The position numbers were made by a program, and so were the translations under genes. The notes below the pieces were generated by a model. It did not search any database, was not told where the DNA came from, and worked only from the letters and a program-made list of their open reading frames with translations. From Paramicrosporidium saccamoebae KSL3 (taxonomy: Eukaryota > Fungi > Cryptomycota), in contig MTSL01000027.1 in NCBI GenBank assembly GCA_002794465.1, positions 1-10,317 of the forward strand: 10,317 nucleotides of DNA, written 5' to 3'. Each line of letters opens with the position of its first letter. Position 1 is the first letter of the stretch. This document shows positions 1-10,317 of the stretch, one piece after another.

Positions 1-216
1 CTAGAATAGCACGAATACACATCTCACTGTCCTCAAATACCCAGCAACTAGGTCTTCTCTAAACTAGGGAACTATTTCCAAAGACATGCTAATCAGCCTT
101 CTACACCACATAGAGACATGATAATGCAATGTTAATAGTAAGATTTAATCACAATATAGACCCAACAGTTCAATGTTCATAGTAACGATAGAACCCTTGT
201 CAGTTGTCAAGTGCCA

Positions 217-768
217 ATGCTCAACGTCGGAGTGGGTCGTCTTTCTTGCCGAATCGGTTGGCGTAAATCTTGTCGAATGGTTCGTTGTTTTGCCACAACA
301 ACCACACCTACAGTTGAAGCTATATCTGCCGTAAAGGCTAGCATTCCCTCCGCCTCTGTCGATACAGTTCCCCATTCTCCTGAACTCGCCGGTCTCGTTG
401 ACCATATTTGTCAGCTCAACCTAATCCAGACCGCCCAGCTCGTATCTTTGCTCAAGAAGCGACTGAATCTGCCTGATATTATTGCCGCACCGGCTATGGC
501 TGCTGCACCTGCACAAGCTGCGGCGGCGCCAGTGGAGCCAGTGGTGGAAAAGACGGAATTTAGAGTGACGCTGGAGAAATTCGACCCAGCCAGCAAGGCA
601 AAGATTATTAGAGAGATCAAGTCCCTGCTACCGCAGCTGAATTTGGTAGAGGCAAAGACTTTTGTGGAATCGGCGCCAAAGCTCATTAAGGAAAAGGTCA
701 AAAAGGACGAGGCGGAGAAATTGAAAAAGACACTCGAAGATCTGGGTGCTACCATTACTCTCGACTAA
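217..768 (+). CDS. MRPL12: Mitochondrial ribosomal protein L7/L12 (bL12m), 183 aa, intronless
   Basis: ATG at 217 (the track starts at GTG 211). Arg-rich, acid-free presequence MLNVGVGRLSCRIGWRKSCRMVRCF. N-terminal L12 helices LVDHICQLNLIQTAQLVSLLKKRLNL, an Ala-rich hinge, and C-terminal domain EKTEFRVTLEKFDPASKAKIIREIKSLLPQLNLVEAKTFVESAPKLIKEKVKKDEAEKLKKTLEDLGATITLD. Confidence 0.95.
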   Translation: MLNVGVGRLSCRIGWRKSCRMVRCFATTTTPTVEAISAVKASIPSASVDTVPHSPELAGLVDHICQLNLIQTAQLVSLLKKRLNLPDIIAAPAMAAAPAQAAAAPVEPVVEKTEFRVTLEKFDPASKAKIIREIKSLLPQLNLVEAKTFVESAPKLIKEKVKKDEAEKLKKTLEDLGATITLD

Positions 769-1048
769 TTGAATGCTGGGCACCACTCTAGGCCCATTGA
801 CTGCTACTCTAGATTAACGACCAGTAATTCATTACATTTGAATGATCATAAATGTTTGTGAGAGAGTATATCTAAGGGAGCTATTAAAGAAGTAAAGTTT
901 TCATTTAAAGCTGGTGACGCCTTTTGTAGGCCGGTGTCCGTAACACACTCGGCTAACTTTATGGAATGGCATTTACGATTGGGACCACCAATCGCAAGCG
1001 GATGCTATCCCACCGCTTCATATAAAACTAACAATGCTACATATATTT

Positions 1049-1749
1049 TTACATGGTGGTACAACCAGTGGATTTCCTATTCGGGGCATTCTTCTTCTCA
1101 CCCGCCGCTTGTTCCTGACGGGATTTTTGTATTTCCTTTACTAGCCCATAGAACGACTCTTCTACATTGTGTCGAGCCTTGGCGGATGTTTCAATGTATC
1201 GACAGCCAAACGACCTTGCCAGCTCCTTGGCCTCGGCTGCAGAGATTTGTCGCTCGGCAGAGAGATCGGATTTGTTGCCCACTAGAATCATGGGAAAGGC
1301 ATCTGCATCCTTCACCCTCAATATTTGTTCCTGGAACTTTTGCACCTCTTGGAAGGAGCTCTTGGAATTGAGGGCAAAGACGAGGAGAAACCCATCTCCT
1401 CGGCGCAAATAGCTGTCCCGGAGTGCACTAGCAGGTCAGTGGTGATAAGGGATGTACCTGTAGTCTTCCTGTCCAGCCGTATCAAGAATATCCAGAATCG
1501 CAGTTTCCTCATCCACAGTACACTGTTTCCTGTACGAATCTTATTATGAAAATATGCAAAGTCGGCCTGGTACCTTCGATGGTAGGGTCGTATTCATCCA
1601 CAAAACGTGCATGCACAAATTGGATAGTAAGGGCACTTTTTCCCACACCTGCAACAATCACGTCACTCGACGGGCCTACCTCCGCCACCAACCACTACGA
1701 GGCGATACTCAGGCAGATTAACGCCAGCGGACTTTGCTCGAGGTGGCAT
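1049..1749 (-). CDS. RAS: Ras-family small GTPase, 201 aa, 4 exons
   Basis: Exons (minus strand): 1749-1680, 1648-1574, 1539-1458, 1427-1049 (606 nt). GT-AG introns: 1679-1649 (31 nt), 1573-1540 (34 nt), 1457-1428 (30 nt). The spliced protein [34 protein letters not shown]...YDPTIEDSYRKQ...DTAGQEDY...GNKSD...ETSAK...CTTM has all G boxes, the Ras effector loop and a CaaX box. Confidence 0.96.
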
Positions 1750-1944
1750 GAGTCGTGGAAACAAATGACACTTGCGGCGACCAATGAGAAATGGCCCCGC
1801 TTTATACACGCCATGCTGACGAGATCACATGGTAAAATGAGCCATGCTTGGGTTCGATTACAAGCAGGTATAGCGTGATCTTGGTATTAGGATAGGATTC
1901 CAGTACAAGAGGTCCACGGCCATGCCCCGGTTAGTAACAGTACA

Positions 1945-2224
1945 ATGGGTGGTGTGTGTTCTTGCTTTGGTTCTGAAGATGATCGTGAAAGGGACCGCCA
2001 CCAAAGGCAGAACAATTCTGAGCGTGCTGCCCAACGTGAGCAGGTAGCCCGTGCCACCGAGGAGCGATTAAATCAGGTTAGCACATTGAGAACGCAACTA
2101 ACTGTGACAGGTGGAGAGTCAGAAGCGTAAAGGCACGCTTGGAAAAAAGCTCGCCGAACGACAGGCTAATCCTCATGGTCCTCCACCCTCCGAGACCCCC
2201 CTTCAGTGGCGCGCAGAGGCTTAA
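1945..2224 (+). CDS. SVIP: Small VCP/p97-interacting protein (SVIP)-like micro-protein, 81 aa, 2 exons
   Basis: Exons 1945-2076 and 2111-2224; intron 2077-2110 (34 nt, GTTAGC...ACTAAC...CAG). Protein: MGGVCSCFGSEDDRERDRHQRQNNSERAAQREQVARATEERLNQVESQKRKGTLGKKLAERQANPHGPPPSETPLQWRAEA. It has an MG myristoylation signal with nearby Cys, a central A..A.ER helix and a C-terminal GPPP...L.W motif, as recalled for the SVIP family. Confidence 0.8.
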
Positions 2225-2260
2225 TCAGCTAGTGTCAAGTTGTTGCTATAGTGAAGAATC

Positions 2261-2330
2261 TGAACCCTGCAAACATTGTGAATCCTGCGAACATTGAATC
2301 CTGCGAACATTGTGGATCCTGCGAATACTG
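2261..2330. repeat. Degenerate 18-bp tandem repeat, about 4 copies, one copy 2 nt short
   Basis: tgaaccctgcaaacattg (2261-2278), tgaatcctgcgaacat (2279-2294), tgaatcctgcgaacattg (2295-2312), tggatcctgcgaatactg (2313-2330). Confidence 0.9.
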
Positions 2331-2511
2331 TAACCTCTACCAACCTCACTGGGGAACTTTACGAGTATTGCAAATTCTACTAACATTACTGCGAACACCA
2401 AGTAGCAATAATAACAACGTGGCTTTTTTGTAGAAATGAGGATATCCCATAATAGGATCACATAATTCACACCAATCAAAAGTCTAAACAAAACAGTTTA
2501 GCCGCTTGTCG

Positions 2512-5377
2512 ATGGCCACGACTGTCGAGGTACCAAAAGGTCAGTTTATTGTTCATTATGTGATTGCAGCGCGTTGAAGAGCTTTTGGCAGACGCCGGCT
2601 ATTCGGCCCTGTTGCCCACAAACAGCAATATTTTTGCGGGCGGGGACGGGTATGCCGTAGAGGAGGCGCCTATTGGCTATTACCGGTTTCATTTCTGGAA
2701 AAACGATGAACATTGGAAGGGTTCCTCCCTCATAATGATGTTGATGATGTAGAACATGAAAATTGGATCGCCAGCACCGATGTGTCGGGACCCATGTGCG
2801 TGTCAATTCTGAAGGATCAACAAGGATCCAATAGCCGCGTCTTTTATCGCATCCTATTCCGTACAATCTTTAGCACAAAGTCAATGGTCCTACTGGGAGA
2901 CGATATTTCTGGGATCCTCGGCGGCAGCAAGAGCCTTACAATGACTCGGATTATTGGCGCGGCTCTCAAATTATTCATTGAACATGAGAGGGACGAAATG
3001 TGTGCATTGGAGGACGAATTTGGAGCAATGTCAATCAGATCGTCTTGTACAATTGCGACACTTTCAGACGAGTTGGTGCGCAATCTGCCGTCCTCGAGAT
3101 TGCACGATGGCACGGCCATGACCAACAGTGAAGTGGGACTAACGCGCCGCAATACGGTTCGGAGCAGTGGAGGCGGCACTGTCCCTCGTCCGGAAGTTAT
3201 GGTGACCGCAGTGGAAGTCCCAGCACAAAAGAATGAGTCGCTGCAAAGAAAGTTTAGAGAATTTAGCAAAGTTAATCCGTTCGAGTTGGCCAAGAGCTTT
3301 ACCCAAGTCAAAGACAAGGAGATTTACACTGTCCTGCAAGATCTGGAACGTGCTCTCGATCCCAAGATATGTCATTTTGACATTGTCGTTGCCGCTGGGA
3401 GCACGGCCAAGAAGTCACAGCAAGAGACTACGTGGAGGGCCTTTACAAAACTCCTCGGCGAAAAGCTGTCGAAACGAGAATTCCAGATGCAGTCAAAATA
3501 TCTGGCCAAAAATGGAAGGGCGCCGTCAAAGACATTGGAAGGAGAGAGAATCAGCATCAGCAAGAATGTCATTCCCGCTGCCGAAACGGATTCAGAGGAG
3601 AATCGCGAGGAGAAATCCAAAAGAGTGATTGAATTTCTCAAAAATGAGCAGAGTTGTCTGCGCAAACTCGAATGGATGGACGAATTCTTTGTCCAACGAT
3701 TGGATCCCTCTCGAAGCGGAAATACGCTGATGAAGGCGGAGACGTTTAAAAAGATATTTGAAGGATTTGGATCATTCGTAGCCCTTCACAAAGGTTTTTT
3801 CACCAAACTATCCAACAATACGGAGACTTTGACTGAGGATGAGATTTGCAATCTAGAAAGGGAGGGCCTGTTGACTGCCCAGTCAATAGCCGAGACAATG
3901 GTGGGTCTTTGCGACGAACGTGCATTTGACATTTATTCTCAATTTTTCCGAGACCAGGAGGAGCGTTGTAATGCGATCAAGGAAGAATATTCAAAAAACG
4001 AAGAGTTTGCTGAGCTGTCGGAAGAGGCAGCACGGGATCCAAGGTCAGGAAGACAACTACTAAACATGGTAGTACCAATTATCATGCAGCAGCTCACTCG
4101 CTATCCATTGCAATTCAAGGCAATTATAGAAAATACCTACAAGGACTCGGAGGACCTGCCAACCCTCAGGAGAGCCTATGATAAAACCCACGAAATGTTG
4201 AACCGGCTAGAAATGGTCCAGAAGATCCAGGAAGATGGGACCCATTCATTGCGACTCTACAAAACGGTGCACAGCTGCGATCCAACAGTGGCCAATGCTG
4301 AGCGTATTTTTATTATGAAGATGGCGGCATATGAAGTGGAACGGGGAGAGGCCAACTTTTCCAAGAGAATCACCTTTTATTTGTATAATGACCTGATTGT
4401 GGCTGCCCGGAAACGCCGTGGCCAGAAGGGAAAGTTTGAAAAGGACTCGTATTCCGGCGTCACCCACGATTTCATGTTTTCCACACCCATTGATGGGACT
4501 ATAATGCGAAGACTCGATGTGACTGCCAAAGTCCGCAAGAACGCCACCAAAACCTTTGGAGTGGATCTGTCACCGGCAGCCAGCGTGTTGCAAAATGATC
4601 GGTGTGTAAAGTACGCCTCCTGTGCAGAAGAGGTCAGTGGCAGTTTCATTTTGGTTCCCAAGAAACAAGAAAAGCTGAATGCCTTTTTGGAAAAGTTTAC
4701 CAATGCTGAACACCAACTGTTCCTGTCCAGTACCCCTCTTTGATGCCCACTAACCGATAGGATCTCAAGCGGATGTCTATATAAGGAGGGCTGAGGACAA
4801 GACGCTCTATTTCCATGTCTATAGGCAGGCGGACTATTTGCATTGTCAGCGTCGAAATCGACATGCAGTGCTTTATTGTCACCAGACACCGGTGCCACCG
4901 GCCGTGTTTTCTGAGGATCAAACCGAGTCCATAATGGTAGTGCAGGCCATGCAAAGCACTTTCCGATGGCTTGTAAAATGTCGCGATTGCATCGTGTCCT
5001 CACATGACAATTACGAGGCTATTCGCGAGTTCCACTCGGCCGATATTGTCAGTCCTGATTTTACTCGTGCCCTAATCAACTGTCATCTGATGCACTCTAT
5101 CTATCCTCCGTTTGGGCCTCATCTAAAGTTGCAGATGCGTCAACAGCTGGAAAAGCACATTGGACCCTTTTCTAAGGGGATGATGCGTAAGATGCGCGAA
5201 ATTGTGAACAGGCTGCACAAGACTGTCGATCCGACGACATTGGTGGACAACAGTGATTCGGGCTCTGTATACTCTATTGAAAACTCTTCCATTATGGAGG
5301 ACTCGGGAAAGCCCACAAAGACGGTTCTCGGGAAAATGTTTGGACGCTTTAAATCACCGCTCTCTCGTCTGCAATAA
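2512..5377 (+). CDS. RhoGEF (DH-PH) protein with flanking Rap1GAP-like segments, about 920 aa, 4 exons
   Basis: Proposed exons 2512-2529, 2570-2720, 2753-4729, 4761-5377 (2763 nt). Introns: 2530-2569 (40 nt), 2721-2752 (32 nt), 4730-4760 (31 nt, with CTAAC branch site). This joins track ORFs 2564, 2713 and 4838. DH domain about 3607-4230 (RVIEFLKNEQSCLRKL...QQLTRYPLQFKAIIENTYKDSEDLPTLRRA). PH domain about 4250-4715 (RIFI...FYLYNDLIVAARK). The first exon and start codon are the least certain part. Confidence 0.85.
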
Positions 5378-5399
5378 AGACCTGTCTGTTCTGTTTATT
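5373..5399. terminator. Facing polyadenylation signals of two convergent genes
   Basis: AATAAA on + at 5373-5378 overlaps the GEF stop codon (TAA 5375-5377). AATAAA on - at 5399-5394 lies 2 nt past the stop (5404-5402) of the opposite gene. Confidence 0.55.
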
Positions 5400-5401
5400 A
5401 T

Positions 5402-6280
5402 TTACATTGTCATCTTTTTGAGACCTTGTCGAGCTGTCTGCAATAAAGTCGGCTCCACCTTGCCTTTCAATGCCTTTCCCACTGGCAGCACTGTCAGTTT
5501 AGCCTTTGCCTTGCGTAGATCACCAAAAGTAATTGCCCGGTTGACTGGTCCGGTGCTTTTCTTCAATGATTGGCGTTGCTTCACCAAGTCGCTGCGGGAG
5601 GGGGCGGCCATTTTGTCCGTTGAGCGACTCTTTGCCATCACTTTGACATCAACCCAATCGCGCCACAAGAGAGGTGTTTTGGGGTCTTTTGAACGGGCCA
5701 GCAGACATCGAATCCATGCTGTGAACATTTCCTTTTTCAGTCCGCTTTGCTCCTTTTTCTCCAGGAGCGGCGCAACCATCTGCCAAAGAGATCCTTCCTC
5801 CTTACCAGACAAATCGTCCAGGCTGGCAATGTTTCCCGTCATGGCCAGTGCATTGACCAGTTCCGGTGGAAGTTGGGGCATGTCCTCTAGAAGAGCAGAA
5901 ATCTTGCGCAATTTTTTAATCGGTGATTCTGTTGTGCTGTCTTTGGCCGGCGATCTCTTCAAGGGGCTTCCTGACTTGAGTGGCGACTTTTGAGATTGAT
6001 CTAAAGTCTCTGTTCCTTTAACTTTGGAGGGAGTCACGTTTGTCGACGGCTTTTTCAACGGACTCTCACGTACTGAGCCTTTGTTACTAGTCTTTAACGG
6101 ACTTTCACGTACTGAGCCTTTGTTACTAGTCTTTAACGGACTTTCACGTATTGAGCCTTTGTTACTAGTCTTTAGCGGACTTGCACATACTGAGCCTTTG
6201 TTACTGGCTTTCAACGGACTATCCTTTGGGGTGCCCTGAGAGCTGCGACTACCACGTAGATTGTAAACGCTGGTGGGCAT
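5402..6280 (-). CDS. Hypothetical Ser/Pro/Lys-rich protein, 292 aa, with SPLK repeats and WH2-like C-terminal motifs
   Basis: Long open frame with first ATG at 6280 (the track starts at GTG 6307). The 39-bp repeat preserves the frame. It is convergent with the GEF gene and divergent from the F-BAR gene. No family recognised. Confidence 0.8.
   Translation of the reverse strand: MPTSVYNLRGSRSSQGTPKDSPLKASNKGSVCASPLKTSNKGSIRESPLKTSNKGSVRESPLKTSNKGSVRESPLKKPSTNVTPSKVKGTETLDQSQKSPLKSGSPLKRSPAKDSTTESPIKKLRKISALLEDMPQLPPELVNALAMTGNIASLDDLSGKEEGSLWQMVAPLLEKKEQSGLKKEMFTAWIRCLLARSKDPKTPLLWRDWVDVKVMAKSRSTDKMAAPSRSDLVKQRQSLKKSTGPVNRAITFGDLRKAKAKLTVLPVGKALKGKVEPTLLQTARQGLKKMTM
6054..6220. repeat. 39-bp coding minisatellite, about 4.3 copies
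   Basis: Unit tttaacggactttcacgtactgagcctttgttactagtc. Copies at 6054-6092, 6093-6131, 6132-6170 and 6171-6209, plus a partial copy at 6210-6220. On the minus strand it encodes SPLK(T/A)SNKGS(V/I)(R/C)(E/A). Confidence 0.97.
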
Positions 6281-6411
6281 CTTTTCTTCTGTTGACACCG
6301 CGGTCACACCCGCTCAAATATAATATAAGAACAATTCGTTTCCTAGTAACGCCATCCCTGCGGACTTTTAGATTATTTTGAATACCATTCGCTACTTGGT
6401 TGGAACGATTC
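6281..6411. promoter_or_regulatory. Putative bidirectional promoter, 131 bp
   Basis: Gap between divergent ATGs at 6280 (-) and 6412 (+), with an AT-rich core aaatataatataag near 6316-6329. Positional inference only. Confidence 0.4.
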
Positions 6412-7918
6412 ATGATGACCTTTGGCTCTGAATTATTGGATAAACAAAGTGAAATTGAGCAGTATGGACAGGCGGGAAATGAGGCCGTATCTCGACTGGC
6501 TGATTATCTCCGTCGTCGAGCCGCCCTTAGCGAGGATTACGCCCGAGGACTGCAGAAACTCAATCGGCAATTCTCGCCCGTGCAGCCGCATGAAATTGGG
6601 TACGCATTATCGAGATTCTAATTATAGGATGGACAATTTACTGGGGGCGTCGGATGCGGTTGTCGGGGCTCACCTGTTGCTGGTGGAACAGGTGCAAAAT
6701 TCGCTTCTGGATGGAACGCGGATGACGGTGCGTGATCACGATCGACAGCGTCGCGAAGTGCTGGCCGAGATTCGCATGCTGCGGACAGAGTGGAAGAAGA
6801 TTTTGGCTTCCTTTGACAAGACTCGTCGTTCCCGTGACGGAGCCGTCAAGGCAGCCGAGGATGCCCGGGCTGCGTTTGAGAAGGCAAACAATGACAAGAA
6901 TGTCACCAAGGCGTATGTGGAAAAATGTCGAGACGAGTATGCCATCAAGGCGAGGAAGGCGCTAGTCTACAAGGAAGAGTACATCCAGGCCGCCCGCATC
7001 ATCAATGGACAACAAAAGAAGCATTACGAAGAAGACTTGCCGGCCACCTTTGACAAATTACAGAAAATTGAAGAGACCCGTCTGGCCAAGATCAAGCTGC
7101 ATCTGAACGAATTTGGGTTGTTGATAACTAGCGCCTTGGCTGAAGAGCTGAATGGATTCAGAGATATGCTGTCAAAATGGGACCGCCTCGTCCCAAACAC
7201 AATTGTACAAAAGTTTATTGACGAGAATCGCGACGACGCGCCCTTTGAGTTTCCCGAAACCATTCTGATCGATGAATCTGCCTCCATTGAATCTCTGGGC
7301 CTGACCTCGAGGACCACCACACAGAATCGCATAGAAAGCGCCCTCATCTCTTCCGATGATCCTGAAGTCATTCAGACAAGACTTGACGAGCTGAGCAAGA
7401 GACTATTGACTTTGGAAAAGCAACGAGAAGGCGCCAAGATTCTGCGCGACATGTACGTATCAAGACCTGAACTCGCTGATCAAAAGACCAAAACTGAGGC
7501 TGCCAAAGAACTGGACGACCTCACCTCGCAGCTCGAATGTCTCCAAATTGAACAGGAACAACTCCAGGAAAAGCTCGAGAGTCTCGCCAAAGCTGATACT
7601 TTTTCTGCTAGATCTGTCCAGAGTGCTCCTTCCTCACCAGTTCTTTGGGAAGAGGCCACCGCCAATATGGAATCGCCCATTCCTGGTGCTCCTAATTCAT
7701 GCTTGTCGGCAATCGAGACGAACCCAAATGAAAAGCTAAAGGCGCTCTTCAATGCCACGGCCATTTTTGACTTTGAAGCTACTGAATCAGCCCACGAGTT
7801 GAGCATTAAGAGCGGCGAGACTGTGACGATCCTTTCCAATGACGGAGAGTGGTGGCAAGCACAGAATGCCGATGGGAGTATTGGCTTTGTGCCCTTTAAC
7901 TATGTACGTCAAGAGTAG
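6412..7918 (+). CDS. F-BAR-HR1-SH3 protein of the CIP4/TOCA-1/FNBP1 type, 492 aa, 2 exons
   Basis: Exons 6412-6599 and 6628-7918; intron 6600-6627 (28 nt, GTACGC...CTAAT...TAG). FCH/F-BAR start MTFGSELLD...LADYLRRRAALSEDYARGLQKL. HR1-like coil about 7358-7583 (LEKQREGAKILRDMYVSRPELAD). SH3 about 7748-7915 (ATAIFDFEATESAHELSIKSGETVTILSNDGEWWQAQNADGSIGFVPFNYV). Confidence 0.9.
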
Positions 7919-7967
7919 AAGTATGTGTATTGACGTATCAGGAACGAAATAAAATTATTAAATGTTT

Positions 7968-8483
7968 ATGCTTCGGAGGTTTACTGGCCCAATGTGGTCG
8001 ACGGGCCGTTCCATCAGTTCAATGTGGTCAAAGGGGCGATGCATGCAGAGCACCGACCGTCCGGAACTTCGAGCTCGCACAATTGAGTGTATCGAATCTG
8101 TCCTGTCCAAACCAACAGCCGTAGCCAAGACTAAACGCAGCACACCGCTGCCCTGTAGTCTAAATGTCCTCATCCGTGGCCTCTCCATCCCCCTTCTTGA
8201 CGCCTATCTACGATTTTGTCTTTCCGCAGCACATTCCCTCTCCAGTCCCACGCGACACGGCGCACTGCCCACACGTATCCAGCGCTGGTCTGTTCTTAGC
8301 AGTCCGCATGTGCACAAGACGGCGTGGACGCAACTGGAGCGAAGAGTGCATAGGAGGGTTTTCGGAGTGTATGGGATGCATGAAGAGGTAATCCCCAAGT
8401 TTATTTGGTATGTGGAGAGACATGCCCCACCGGATATGAAGTTGGAATTTTCCATTCACGACTATGTTAAGCCAGAGCAATAA
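7968..8483 (+). CDS. MRPS10: Mitochondrial ribosomal protein S10 (uS10m, Rsm10)
   Basis: Presequence MLRRFTGPMWSTGRSISS (an alternative ATG lies at 7962). S10 core: LLDAYLRFCLSAAHSL...GALPTRIQRWSVLSSPHVHKTAWTQLERRVHRR...KFIWYVERHAPP. Confidence 0.9.
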   Translation: MLRRFTGPMWSTGRSISSMWSKGRCMQSTDRPELRARTIECIESVLSKPTAVAKTKRSTPLPCSLNVLIRGLSIPLLDAYLRFCLSAAHSLSSPTRHGALPTRIQRWSVLSSPHVHKTAWTQLERRVHRRVFGVYGMHEEVIPKFIWYVERHAPPDMKLEFSIHDYVKPEQ

Positions 8484-8499
8484 ATATCTACGGTTAGGC

Positions 8500-9486
8500 A
8501 TGGTCTATATAGCGAGATTTGTGACAAAAACTGCTGAGATTACAGGCCGAATTGTCGTAGCCATTGGCCAGCAACTTGTTGCACCAATTGTACTTTCAAT
8601 TACCCGATCCATCAGTGGGACCGCTGTCAAAGGAGCCGTGGAGCAAAACTATAATGTGAGGTAGTGAACTGCTTGGCTGAGTGCCGAATGCTGAATTTTG
8701 AGTACTGAATGCTGGGTATCTGCCCAATTTAATATTCCCTCGCTTTACTCGTTATGCCTGTAATGGTTTGTAATCGCAGCAAACCCATGCACCGTACTTG
8801 AAATAAACCTGATACAAATAGTTATATAAATAGTACCGATGCCGTGGGGGCGTGGCTGTATAGTGAGGCGACTGATTGATTATCTAAGAGTATTTACTTC
8901 CCACCGGTGGTCCCAATACATACCCGTCCTGTCAAGGATGGCGTTCGATAGACGCCACCTTCTTTGATAAAGAAATCTTTCGCTTCACTAATCGGTCCTT
9001 TGCCGAAAACCAATCGATCAAGACAGGAGCAGTCGAAGGCGCTTAATTGATGGATAGGATTGTCTTGCTCCTCATTTAGATAATTGCACAAATTGTATTA
9101 AAAAACCTGTCAATGGGACTGTCGAATTAATAATAGAAGAGCTCTCTTCTCGCCTGACAGAGTATATTGGTGCTTGTAAGATCTGATCCATAAAACGTCA
9201 TGTGGGTTGAAAACTCGAGGGTTGCATACTGAATGATGCAACTGAGCAAGCAGGTTTTTGTTCTTCCTTGCGGCGTGGCGGTTCCAACAAAACGTGCCAT
9301 TTTCAATCAATTGAGAGCTCTGCCAAAGTGTCTTGTGGTGGGCCGATCCGCTTCAACAAGGACGGCCGATATTTCATGGAACAAGCATCCATTAATCCTG
9401 TGCTTAGGTTTTCGACACTACGGAACACTGAAGATGGCATCTTCCAATCACGGTCCACAATTTTCGTAAATTGCATTTGTGACTGA
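8500..9486 (+). CDS. Tentative cryptic multi-exon gene (Cys- and N-glycosylation-sequon-rich protein, about 234 aa) or pseudogene
   Basis: A hand-built, phase-consistent model has exons 8500-8655, 8780-8793, 8822-8862, 8889-9031, 9058-9175 and 9254-9486. Introns are 124, 28, 26, 26 and 78 nt, all GT-AG. Two are atypically long for this window, and no homology was recognised. Confidence 0.3.
8676..8717. repeat. Degenerate heptamer tandem repeat, 6 copies, consensus GCTGA(A/G)T
   Basis: gctgagt gccgaat gctgaat tttgagt actgaat gctgggt. Confidence 0.7.
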
Positions 9487-9505
9487 ATTGCAGACTCTCG
9501 CTACA

Positions 9506-10317
9506 ATGAAACGGCTGTTTAGCGCACTGTGTCTTTATGTTTCCATCCAGTCCACACTTAGTGCTTCTTTAAAAGTTCCTACTGAAGCACAGTTGCGCCA
9601 GCGTCTATTTGAGGATCATACTTTGGCTAAATTCAAAAAGATCCTGGAGGTGGCCATTAAGCAAAACTACACAAACCTCCTCAATAGCATTCCTAGCGTG
9701 CCTTATGTGACACCCGAGGAGCATTTGTGCTACTCTATCAAGTGTTTCAAGTCTTATTGGTGTAACACTCCAGATGTGGCCCCAGAACTAGACAAGATGC
9801 AAGACGCTATTCCTTCCATTCTATATGCCGACAACCCCGCAGTGCTTAAATTACTATCACCTGCACTACGCGAAATGGTGCTTGATCCCACCAATTTGGC
9901 TACTTATGATGCTGTGCATCTTGCCCGAAGCCTGGACAATCCAGCCATATTCTTCACCACGGGCGTTGATCTGTGTGAATTTCGCGCTCTGCGAATCATG
10001 AAATATTTGAATGAGGGGAGTACTGTGTTTCAGTACCGCCCGAATTCTGCAGTTACAATGGGAGATATCCGGTACCTTGAACGTCTGATTAGCAAAGGAT
10101 TTTGGGTTCCCAGCATGGAGGACGTCGAAATTGCAATTAGCAATAACGCGCACGATGGCTTGCTGTTTCTTTTAAAAAATTTGAGACAGACGCCTTCCCC
10201 TTCCTCCCTCTACTATCTGATTCAAAATGGCCTTTTAATTTCTCTCGGACGCATACGCTCATGCAGTCTTGGCTGGACGACGAGTCAAGATGAAATTGAC
10301 GAAGCCACCCGATCTGG
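9506..10317 (+). CDS. Secreted hypothetical protein with degenerate ankyrin-like helical repeats; 3' end lies outside the window
   Basis: Stop-free frame from ATG 9506 to the window end (270 codons), missing from the ORF track because it has no stop. Signal-peptide-like start MKRLFSALCLYVSIQSTLSA. Later units of about 28 aa: WVPSMEDVEIAISNNAHDGLLFLLKNLR, QTPSPSSLYYLIQNGLLISLGRIRSCSLG, WTTSQDEIDEA. Confidence 0.8.
   Translation, partial: MKRLFSALCLYVSIQSTLSASLKVPTEAQLRQRLFEDHTLAKFKKILEVAIKQNYTNLLNSIPSVPYVTPEEHLCYSIKCFKSYWCNTPDVAPELDKMQDAIPSILYADNPAVLKLLSPALREMVLDPTNLATYDAVHLARSLDNPAIFFTTGVDLCEFRALRIMKYLNEGSTVFQYRPNSAVTMGDIRYLERLISKGFWVPSMEDVEIAISNNAHDGLLFLLKNLRQTPSPSSLYYLIQNGLLISLGRIRSCSLGWTTSQDEIDEATRS

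Follow-up and report, generated by a model that had tools for sequence, protein, structure and literature searches.

Regulators of small GTPases are, to our knowledge, nearly always built as beads on a string. A different arrangement is found in the cytoplasmic region of plexins, where a GTPase-activating protein (GAP) domain is split by an inserted Rho-GTPase-binding domain. In Rap1GAP, the most conserved helix carries the catalytic Asn thumb, Asn290, and switch I is contacted by the invariant R388 (PMC2265111); the corresponding KRHLGN helix is essential in TSC2 (PMC7804450). The Asn thumb (Asn290/N1643) and the K-R-H-[IL]-G-N helix are the defining catalytic features of RapGAPs (PMC2265111, PMC7804450). 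Here we describe a gene from the cryptomycotan fungus Paramicrosporidium saccamoebae KSL3, located on a stretch of 10,317 nucleotides (contig MTSL01000027.1, positions 1 to 10,317), the whole of which is referred to as the window. In the product of this gene, a DH-PH cassette of a Rho guanine nucleotide exchange factor (GEF) is probably nested in a surface loop of a Rap1GAP-type module, and this module is most likely a pseudo-GAP. Our literature searches found no description of a DH-PH unit nested in a RapGAP-type domain, in line with the remark in an earlier model-made reading of the same letters (hereafter the first-pass annotation) that it knew of no such architecture. The gene and the domains of its product are as follows.

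2512-5377, plus strand: RhoGEF/RapGAP-like gene of four exons (2512-2529, 2570-2720, 2753-4729 and 4761-5377) encoding 920 residues

2678-3078, plus strand: RapGAP dimerisation-type domain, residues ~43-165 (YYRFHFW..EHENW..GPMCVSI..YRILFRT, followed by a long helix); contains intron 2

3259-3528, plus strand: first half of the RapGAP catalytic-type domain, residues 226-315 (NPFELAKSF..LERALDPKICHFDIVV..WRAFTKLLGEKL..LAKNGRAPS)

3631-4203, plus strand: DH (RhoGEF) domain, residues 350-540; Pfam PF00621, E=1.8e-19, 71 bits against a cutoff of 27.6

4246-4719, plus strand: PH domain, residues ~555-712; weak Pfam match to ECT2_PH at residues 572-620

4761-5218, plus strand: second half of the RapGAP catalytic-type domain, residues 716-868 (ADVYIRR..LYFHV..AVLYCH..IMVVQA..FRWLVKCRD..ALINCH..YPPF..QMRQQLE)

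The relationship of the flanks to RapGAPs emerged from profile-profile alignment with hhalign against a profile of 45 sequences, comprising 41 non-redundant contiguous Rap1GAP-type segments obtained from metagenome contigs by tblastn and four sequences from the PDB. When the flanks were joined with the DH-PH removed, hhalign returned 97.8% (E=1.2e-12) over 213 columns running across the junction (query positions 80-314), with a score of 99.0, whereas RapGAP profiles with permuted columns (n = 30) reached 16.2 +/- 3.4 (maximum 23.3) and the reversed profile reached 19.6. Each part also found its place when aligned alone. The N-terminal part matched at query positions 1-62, corresponding to the dimerisation domain (95.5%, P=1.6e-8; score 65.9, the permuted profiles giving 13-16 +/- 2.5-3.4 overall and at most 23.3); the half before the insertion matched Rap1GAP 169-240 (query positions 80-151; 68.8%, P=4.5e-5; score 35.9 against a permutation null of 13.2 +/- 2.5); and the half after it matched Rap1GAP 260-402 (query positions 171-313; 89%, P=2.4e-6; score 46.3 against 13.5 +/- 2.5). 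The DH and PH alignments of the same family, used as controls, remained at noise (DH, 0.1%, P=0.41, score 13.7; PH, 0.4%, P=0.13, score 16.4). The two halves thus map independently to complementary and collinear parts of the catalytic domain, a pattern expected of a nested insertion but not of a chance match.

Other searches pointed in the same direction. The Pfam family Rap-GAP_dimer (PF21022) passed its curated cutoff of 27 bits in the relative P0037 (residues 46-105, 27.9 bits, E=3.3e-6), and the same region of the profile was matched at 12.9-14.8 bits in the window protein and two orthologues, the match in the window protein (residues 43-98, 12.9 bits, E=0.15) being sub-threshold. In a PDB-wide hmmsearch with a joined profile of 11 family sequences, Rap1GAP (1srq/3brw) gave the only matches with E<1 (E=0.0045), the next standing at 1.9. 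With a shallow RapGAP profile made of four PDB chains (1srq, 6ssh, 9qwp and 7dl2), hhalign gave 0.9% when six family sequences were used and 28% (E=6e-4) when 11 were used. Taken as sequence evidence, these results support homology of both flanks to a Rap1GAP-type module comprising a dimerisation and a catalytic-type domain. The first-pass annotation had reached this relationship by aligning motifs by eye. Each motif that it quoted was found at its place (WRAFTKLLGEKL, for example, at residues 284-295, positions 3433-3468), and hhalign recovered the proposed order in a single collinear path across this construct of Rap1GAP, far above chance. Some of the quoted matches are specific to Rap1GAP, such as VVVQA, which is not conserved in TSC2 or RalGAP. 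The RapGAP match that its proposed test sought in the protein without its DH-PH appeared in the profile-profile comparison but not with Pfam Rap_GAP (PF02145).

The same hhalign path locates the insertion. Residue L307 of the window protein pairs with L243 of Rap1GAP (of GGLD), S315 with G248, S715 with Q249, and V721/Y722 with V255/Y256, so that the DH-PH of ~400 residues lies in the loop D244-E253 after GGLD, between G248 and Q249 of Rap1GAP. An insertion at the GGLD loop, as opposed to a fusion end to end, was what the motifs had suggested, and the pairs S315/G248 and S715/Q249 on either side of the DH-PH agree with it. The predicted fold was assessed in P0014, a relative of 1059 residues encoded in a single open reading frame (ORF), which was modelled with AlphaFold2 from a family alignment of 41 rows and stands in for the window protein. 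The model had a mean predicted local distance difference test score (pLDDT) of 73.4 and a predicted template modelling score (pTM) of 0.68; both flank regions were at a pLDDT of ~90, and disorder was predicted for the linker and tail. The succession of strands and helices in the flanks agrees with the hhalign path, as judged from a reading of the Rap1GAP sequence. So high a pTM for a chain of 1059 residues of which about one quarter is disordered suggests that both halves may be packed against each other in a compact arrangement.

Several results weigh against nesting. Pfam PF02145 matched no family member at E values up to 10, and found nothing in the full protein, the N-terminal part alone, the C-terminal part alone or the construct without the DH-PH. 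No match was obtained when a profile of 27 C-terminal parts was searched with HMMER against the PDB sequences, or when a joined profile of six sequences was searched against the PDB with hmmsearch. The half before the insertion was at noise against the four-sequence RapGAP profile (P=0.33), and its support rests on the deeper profile, which was built from unannotated metagenomic tblastn segments. An AlphaFold2 model of the C-terminal flank alone, made from four sequences, was unusable (pLDDT 38), and Foldseek with the P0014 model listed DH-PH structures alone among its 50 matches, which is neutral on the RapGAP fold. The silence of PF02145, the empty HMMER search with the C-terminal part and the noise-level result for the first half would all be expected if only the N-terminal ~60-120 residues were RapGAP-related and the remaining flank segments were specific to this family, in which case the DH-PH would be flanked and not nested; the loss of every invariant catalytic residue, described below, would fit this as well. 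We consider this explanation unlikely. The deeper profile places each half on its correct complementary part, the joined halves are recovered at E=1.2e-12 with the DH and PH controls at noise, and core residues of the catalytic domain are kept (the FHV strand, L243, N371 and F382). In addition, the dimerisation domain accompanies the GAP domain in the Rap1GAP and TSC2 structures (PMC7804450). A DH-PH nested in the catalytic-type domain remains the reading that we prefer.

PF00621 was matched not only by the window protein but by all relatives, and phmmer against the PDB sequences retrieved the DH-PH tandems of PDZ-RhoGEF, LARG, intersectin and p115. In the P0014 model, the DH domain is followed by a beta-sandwich and a C-terminal helix, as in a PH domain, and Foldseek of this model against the PDB aligned DH-PH structures over 430-500 columns with E values down to 1e-13. 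The gene product is thus predicted to be an exchange factor of the Dbl family acting on Rho, Rac or Cdc42. The Glu of conserved region 1 (CR1) is present (NEQ). Two departures count against its activity: in the HMMER alignment, the window protein has Glu at the asparagine position of 'yvNEav' in PDZ-RhoGEF, and the 'QR' of CR3 reads 'QQ'. This asparagine, which we take to be the conserved asparagine of DH domains, is retained in some relatives. With Glu at this position and 'QQ' in CR3, GEF activity is therefore uncertain.

The architecture is conserved across a divergent family. The order of N-terminal flank, DH-PH and C-terminal flank was kept in every relative found, and both flanks are strongly conserved. 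A search of a large protein collection returned six relatives, all of which end where the window has intron 3; on their contigs, a short intron at this position is closely followed by the C-terminal flank, which is 47-88% identical to that of the window. A full HMMER scan with a profile of the C-terminal flank matched 30 proteins, and six relatives (P0014, P0016, P0017, P0022, P0029 and P0037) carry both flanks and the DH-PH in one uninterrupted ORF. One of these, P0037, is OIR57210.1 from Amphiamblys sp. WSBS2006, a metchnikovellid (early-branching) microsporidian, and is annotated as uncharacterised. It has an extra C-terminal region of ~200 residues after the second GAP-like half (residues ~800-995), a segment that the window protein lacks and for which Pfam gave no match. 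No relative with contiguous flanks, that is, without the DH-PH, was found among 30 representative matches and eight word-index matches.

The catalytic-type domain has lost the part on which RapGAP catalysis depends, leaving the following remnant.

4844-4861, plus strand: catalytic-helix remnant, residues 744-749 (CQRRNR); lacks HIGND and with it the Asn thumb

The hhalign path contains a deletion of five residues exactly over H287-I288-G289-N290-D291 of Rap1GAP, which are invariant in 45/45 RapGAPs, and the helix at the position of the catalytic helix in the P0014 model is five residues long (800-804). The invariant K194, Q204, R286 and R388 are replaced in the family, and neither the near-invariant E207, D244, F313 and E373 nor G242 is kept; R388, E373, F313, K194 and Q204 align with L839, H824, Q769, H264 and S273 of the window protein, none of which is conserved among its relatives. 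The residues that persist are F266/H267/V268 (F733/H734/V735 in the window protein, the F being present in 11/11 family members), N371 (N822, 10/11), F382 (F833 of the invariant YPPF, 11/11) and the core residue L243 (L307). Asn748, in 'QRRNR', was considered as a shifted Asn thumb and rejected, given that its counterpart in Rap1GAP is R286 and that relatives have Ser, His or Thr in its place. Because HIGND with its Asn thumb and further invariant residues of RapGAPs are lost, the module is most likely a non-catalytic pseudo-GAP, serving as a scaffold for or a regulator of the GEF, and we infer no GAP activity for it. It is not a RapGAP of the canonical kind, and it is doubtful that it binds Rap in the canonical manner. 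Our literature searches found no pseudo-GAP of the RapGAP type, and we are aware of no pseudo-enzyme described earlier in the RapGAP family. The suggestion of the first-pass annotation that one polypeptide couples Ras/Rap-family state to Rho/Cdc42 signalling is consequently weakened: the nested architecture and the RapGAP homology of both flanks stand, but the deletion of HIGND and the replacement of K194, Q204, R286 and R388 speak against it.

Two further elements outside the folded domains bear on how such a module might act.

3079-3258, plus strand: variable and probably disordered linker, residues ~166-225; contains a conserved basic site of the RRxS/T type

5318-5362, plus strand: C-terminal basic-hydrophobic motif KTVLGKMFGRFKSPL, residues 902-916; follows the disordered tail and is nearly invariant among orthologues

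The linker site reads LTRRNTVRSS (residues 186-195, positions ~3139-3168) and lies between the dimerisation-type and GAP-type parts. The length of the linker varies across the family alignment, and its equivalent in P0014 (residues 114-216) has a pLDDT below 50. Both LTRRNTVRSS and KTVLGKMFGRFKSPL are candidate membrane-binding or phosphorylation sites. We propose that the pseudo-GAP and the dimerisation module together could form a structural and regulatory platform for dimerisation, docking or autoinhibition. Because this platform would hold both ends of the DH-PH, it could transmit conformational changes to it, so that changes in the platform might bring the GEF into an open or a closed state. 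Phosphorylation within the conserved RRxS linker, or the binding of a partner, could act as the trigger, and the RRxS-type linker site and the C-terminal KTVLGKMFGRFKSPL motif would be candidate inputs. This regulatory role of the pseudo-GAP platform is suggested by the architecture.

The platform might instead read a GTPase directly: the dead RapGAP-type domain would dock a GTP-bound Ras-family GTPase, possibly the product of the Ras gene upstream, and thereby switch the GEF allosterically in a Ras-to-Rho relay. Such a sensor role is possible in principle, but we do not favour it, as the canonical contact residues are not kept, and we give this relay a low probability. If it did exist, a single domain insertion would have produced a Ras-to-Rho relay in which a GAP has turned into a sensor. 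A further, improbable alternative is that the split domain retains GAP activity on a GTPase of the Ras, Rap or Rheb-like kind and works through a non-canonical catalytic residue, making the protein a bifunctional GAP-GEF relay. Non-canonical Rap GAPs do exist, as plexins act on Rap with a RasGAP fold; the clade of the window protein has Asn748 close to the deleted segment; and a Ras-family gene lies ~750 bp upstream in conserved synteny. However, Asn748 is replaced by Ser, His or Thr even in the close relatives P0038, P0028 and P0014, and the conserved synteny also takes in unrelated genes (L12, S10 and the F-BAR/SH3 gene), so that it may reflect no more than collinearity. The residues with which Rap1GAP binds or positions its GTPase are replaced as well, namely the invariant R286 and R388 and the near-invariant F313 and E373 (PMC2265111). 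A pseudo-GAP platform therefore remains our preferred view of the module.

The gene model underlying these comparisons consists of a spliced frame running from the ATG at 2512 to the TAA stop at 5375-5377, in which three GT..AG introns restore a single frame.

2530-2569, plus strand: intron 1, 40 nucleotides, GT..AG; orthologues have an intron of 41-42 nucleotides at the same place

2721-2752, plus strand: intron 2, 32 nucleotides, GT..AG, phase 1; within the dimerisation-like domain

4730-4760, plus strand: intron 3, 31 nucleotides, GT..AG, phase 1, with a CTAAC branch site; at the boundary between the PH domain and the C-terminal flank

Both the exon structure and the protein are conserved at six orthologous loci (L001, L003 and L006-L009). 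The position of intron 3 is common to all six; intron 2 is kept in L001 and L003 and is absent in L006, where the ORF is continuous. Intron 3 is absent in the single-ORF relatives P0014, P0016, P0017, P0022 and P0029, and P0038 is an in-frame read-through of it. Because several relatives are single uninterrupted ORFs, 4761-5377 is assigned to the same protein, and a separate transcript for this segment, raised in the first-pass annotation, can be set aside. That the C-terminal flank belongs to a separate gene and the nested protein is an artefact of the gene model is thus highly improbable: prokaryote-style gene callers do split this flank off in several contigs (for example, L003 8130-8801), but a short GT..AG intron of the same phase is conserved at the 4730-4760 point in six loci, six relatives including P0037 hold DH-PH and C-terminal flank in one ORF, and P0038 reads through in frame. 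All introns seen were very short and of the GT..AG type (31-40 nucleotides in the window and 38-53 in orthologous loci), and genes are tightly packed at about eight per 10 kb, indicating a compact eukaryotic genome.

The genes around the GEF were also inspected. A Ras-type GTPase gene of four exons lies on the minus strand at ~1049-1760 and encodes the motif VVVGGGGVGKS, an effector segment with Gln61 and a C-terminal CAAX sequence, CTTM. It lies on the strand opposite to the GEF gene and is likewise found upstream in L001, L003/L004 and L010; in L006, none was detected. The GEF is immediately preceded, on the plus strand, by a two-exon gene (1945-2076 and 2111-2224, with an intron of 34 nucleotides at 2077-2110) for a protein of 81 residues that starts with MGGVCSC, a likely acylation site, and ends with GPPPSETPLQWRAEA. 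Its Pfam match to SVIP (small VCP/p97-interacting protein) stayed below threshold (E=2.3e-4). The gene also precedes the GEF in L006 and L007, and L003/L004 have a weak counterpart. On the other side, convergent with the GEF, an ORF of 301 residues on the minus strand (5402-6307) contains at least four tandem copies of a ~13-residue unit (SPLKTSNKGS[VI]RE) but matches no Pfam family; L003, L006 and L008 each have an ORF of comparable size at this place and on this strand.

Farther downstream, a TOCA/CIP4-like gene occupies 6400-7918 on the plus strand, with FCH/F-BAR, HR1_TOCA and SH3 domains and a short intron near 6620. Every longer orthologous contig shows it in synteny with the GEF. TOCA/CIP4-like proteins bind Cdc42-type GTPases, and this protein and the GEF may act in a shared pathway. 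The window also encodes the mitochondrial ribosomal proteins L7/L12 (211-768) and S10 (7962-8483); as these genes are retained, the organism is not a derived microsporidian.

The locus matters in several respects. A complete DH-PH exchange cassette appears to occupy a loop of another regulator domain, a RapGAP fold without its catalytic asparagine. If the model holds, it is a natural case in which domain insertion mechanically couples two modules that regulate GTPases, it provides a pseudo-enzyme within the RapGAP family, and it offers a marker for a sparsely sampled lineage whose genes are very compact. Because standard Pfam annotation missed the split domain entirely, similar nested architectures may be under-counted.

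Among known systems, we know of no RapGAP-type domain in the Dictyostelium protein GxcC. GxcC is described as a RacGEF that acts as a Rap effector (PMC3675359), which provides a precedent for control of a Rho-family GEF by a Rap-family GTPase; the analogy is functional only, and a GTPase input to the present protein is hypothetical. The nearest architectural analogy is the plexin, which shares with this family a GAP-type domain for Ras/Rap-family GTPases split by a Rho-related insert. Plexin differs in its RasGAP fold, its activity on Rap and its small insert, a binding domain, and it has no sequence relation to the present family. RapGAPs of the Rap1GAP/SIPA1 type (1SRQ, 3BRW; PF21022 and PF02145) share the succession of a dimerisation-type and a catalytic-type domain, and the order of sequence blocks in Rap1GAP matches that of the family over the whole 322-residue construct. 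The catalytic domain of Rap1GAP is uninterrupted and contains HIGND with Asn290, whereas in the family it accommodates the ~400-residue DH-PH and HIGND is deleted, and K194, Q204, E207, G242, D244, R286, F313, E373 and R388 of Rap1GAP are not kept. Finally, the Dbl-family RhoGEFs (PDZ-RhoGEF/LARG/p115, intersectin, ephexin and P-Rex1) gave the best matches in both sequence and fold and share the order of DH followed by PH. Apart from the Glu that takes the place of the Asn of PDZ-RhoGEF 'yvNEav', the window protein differs from them in that its DH-PH is an insert, anchored at both ends in another domain.

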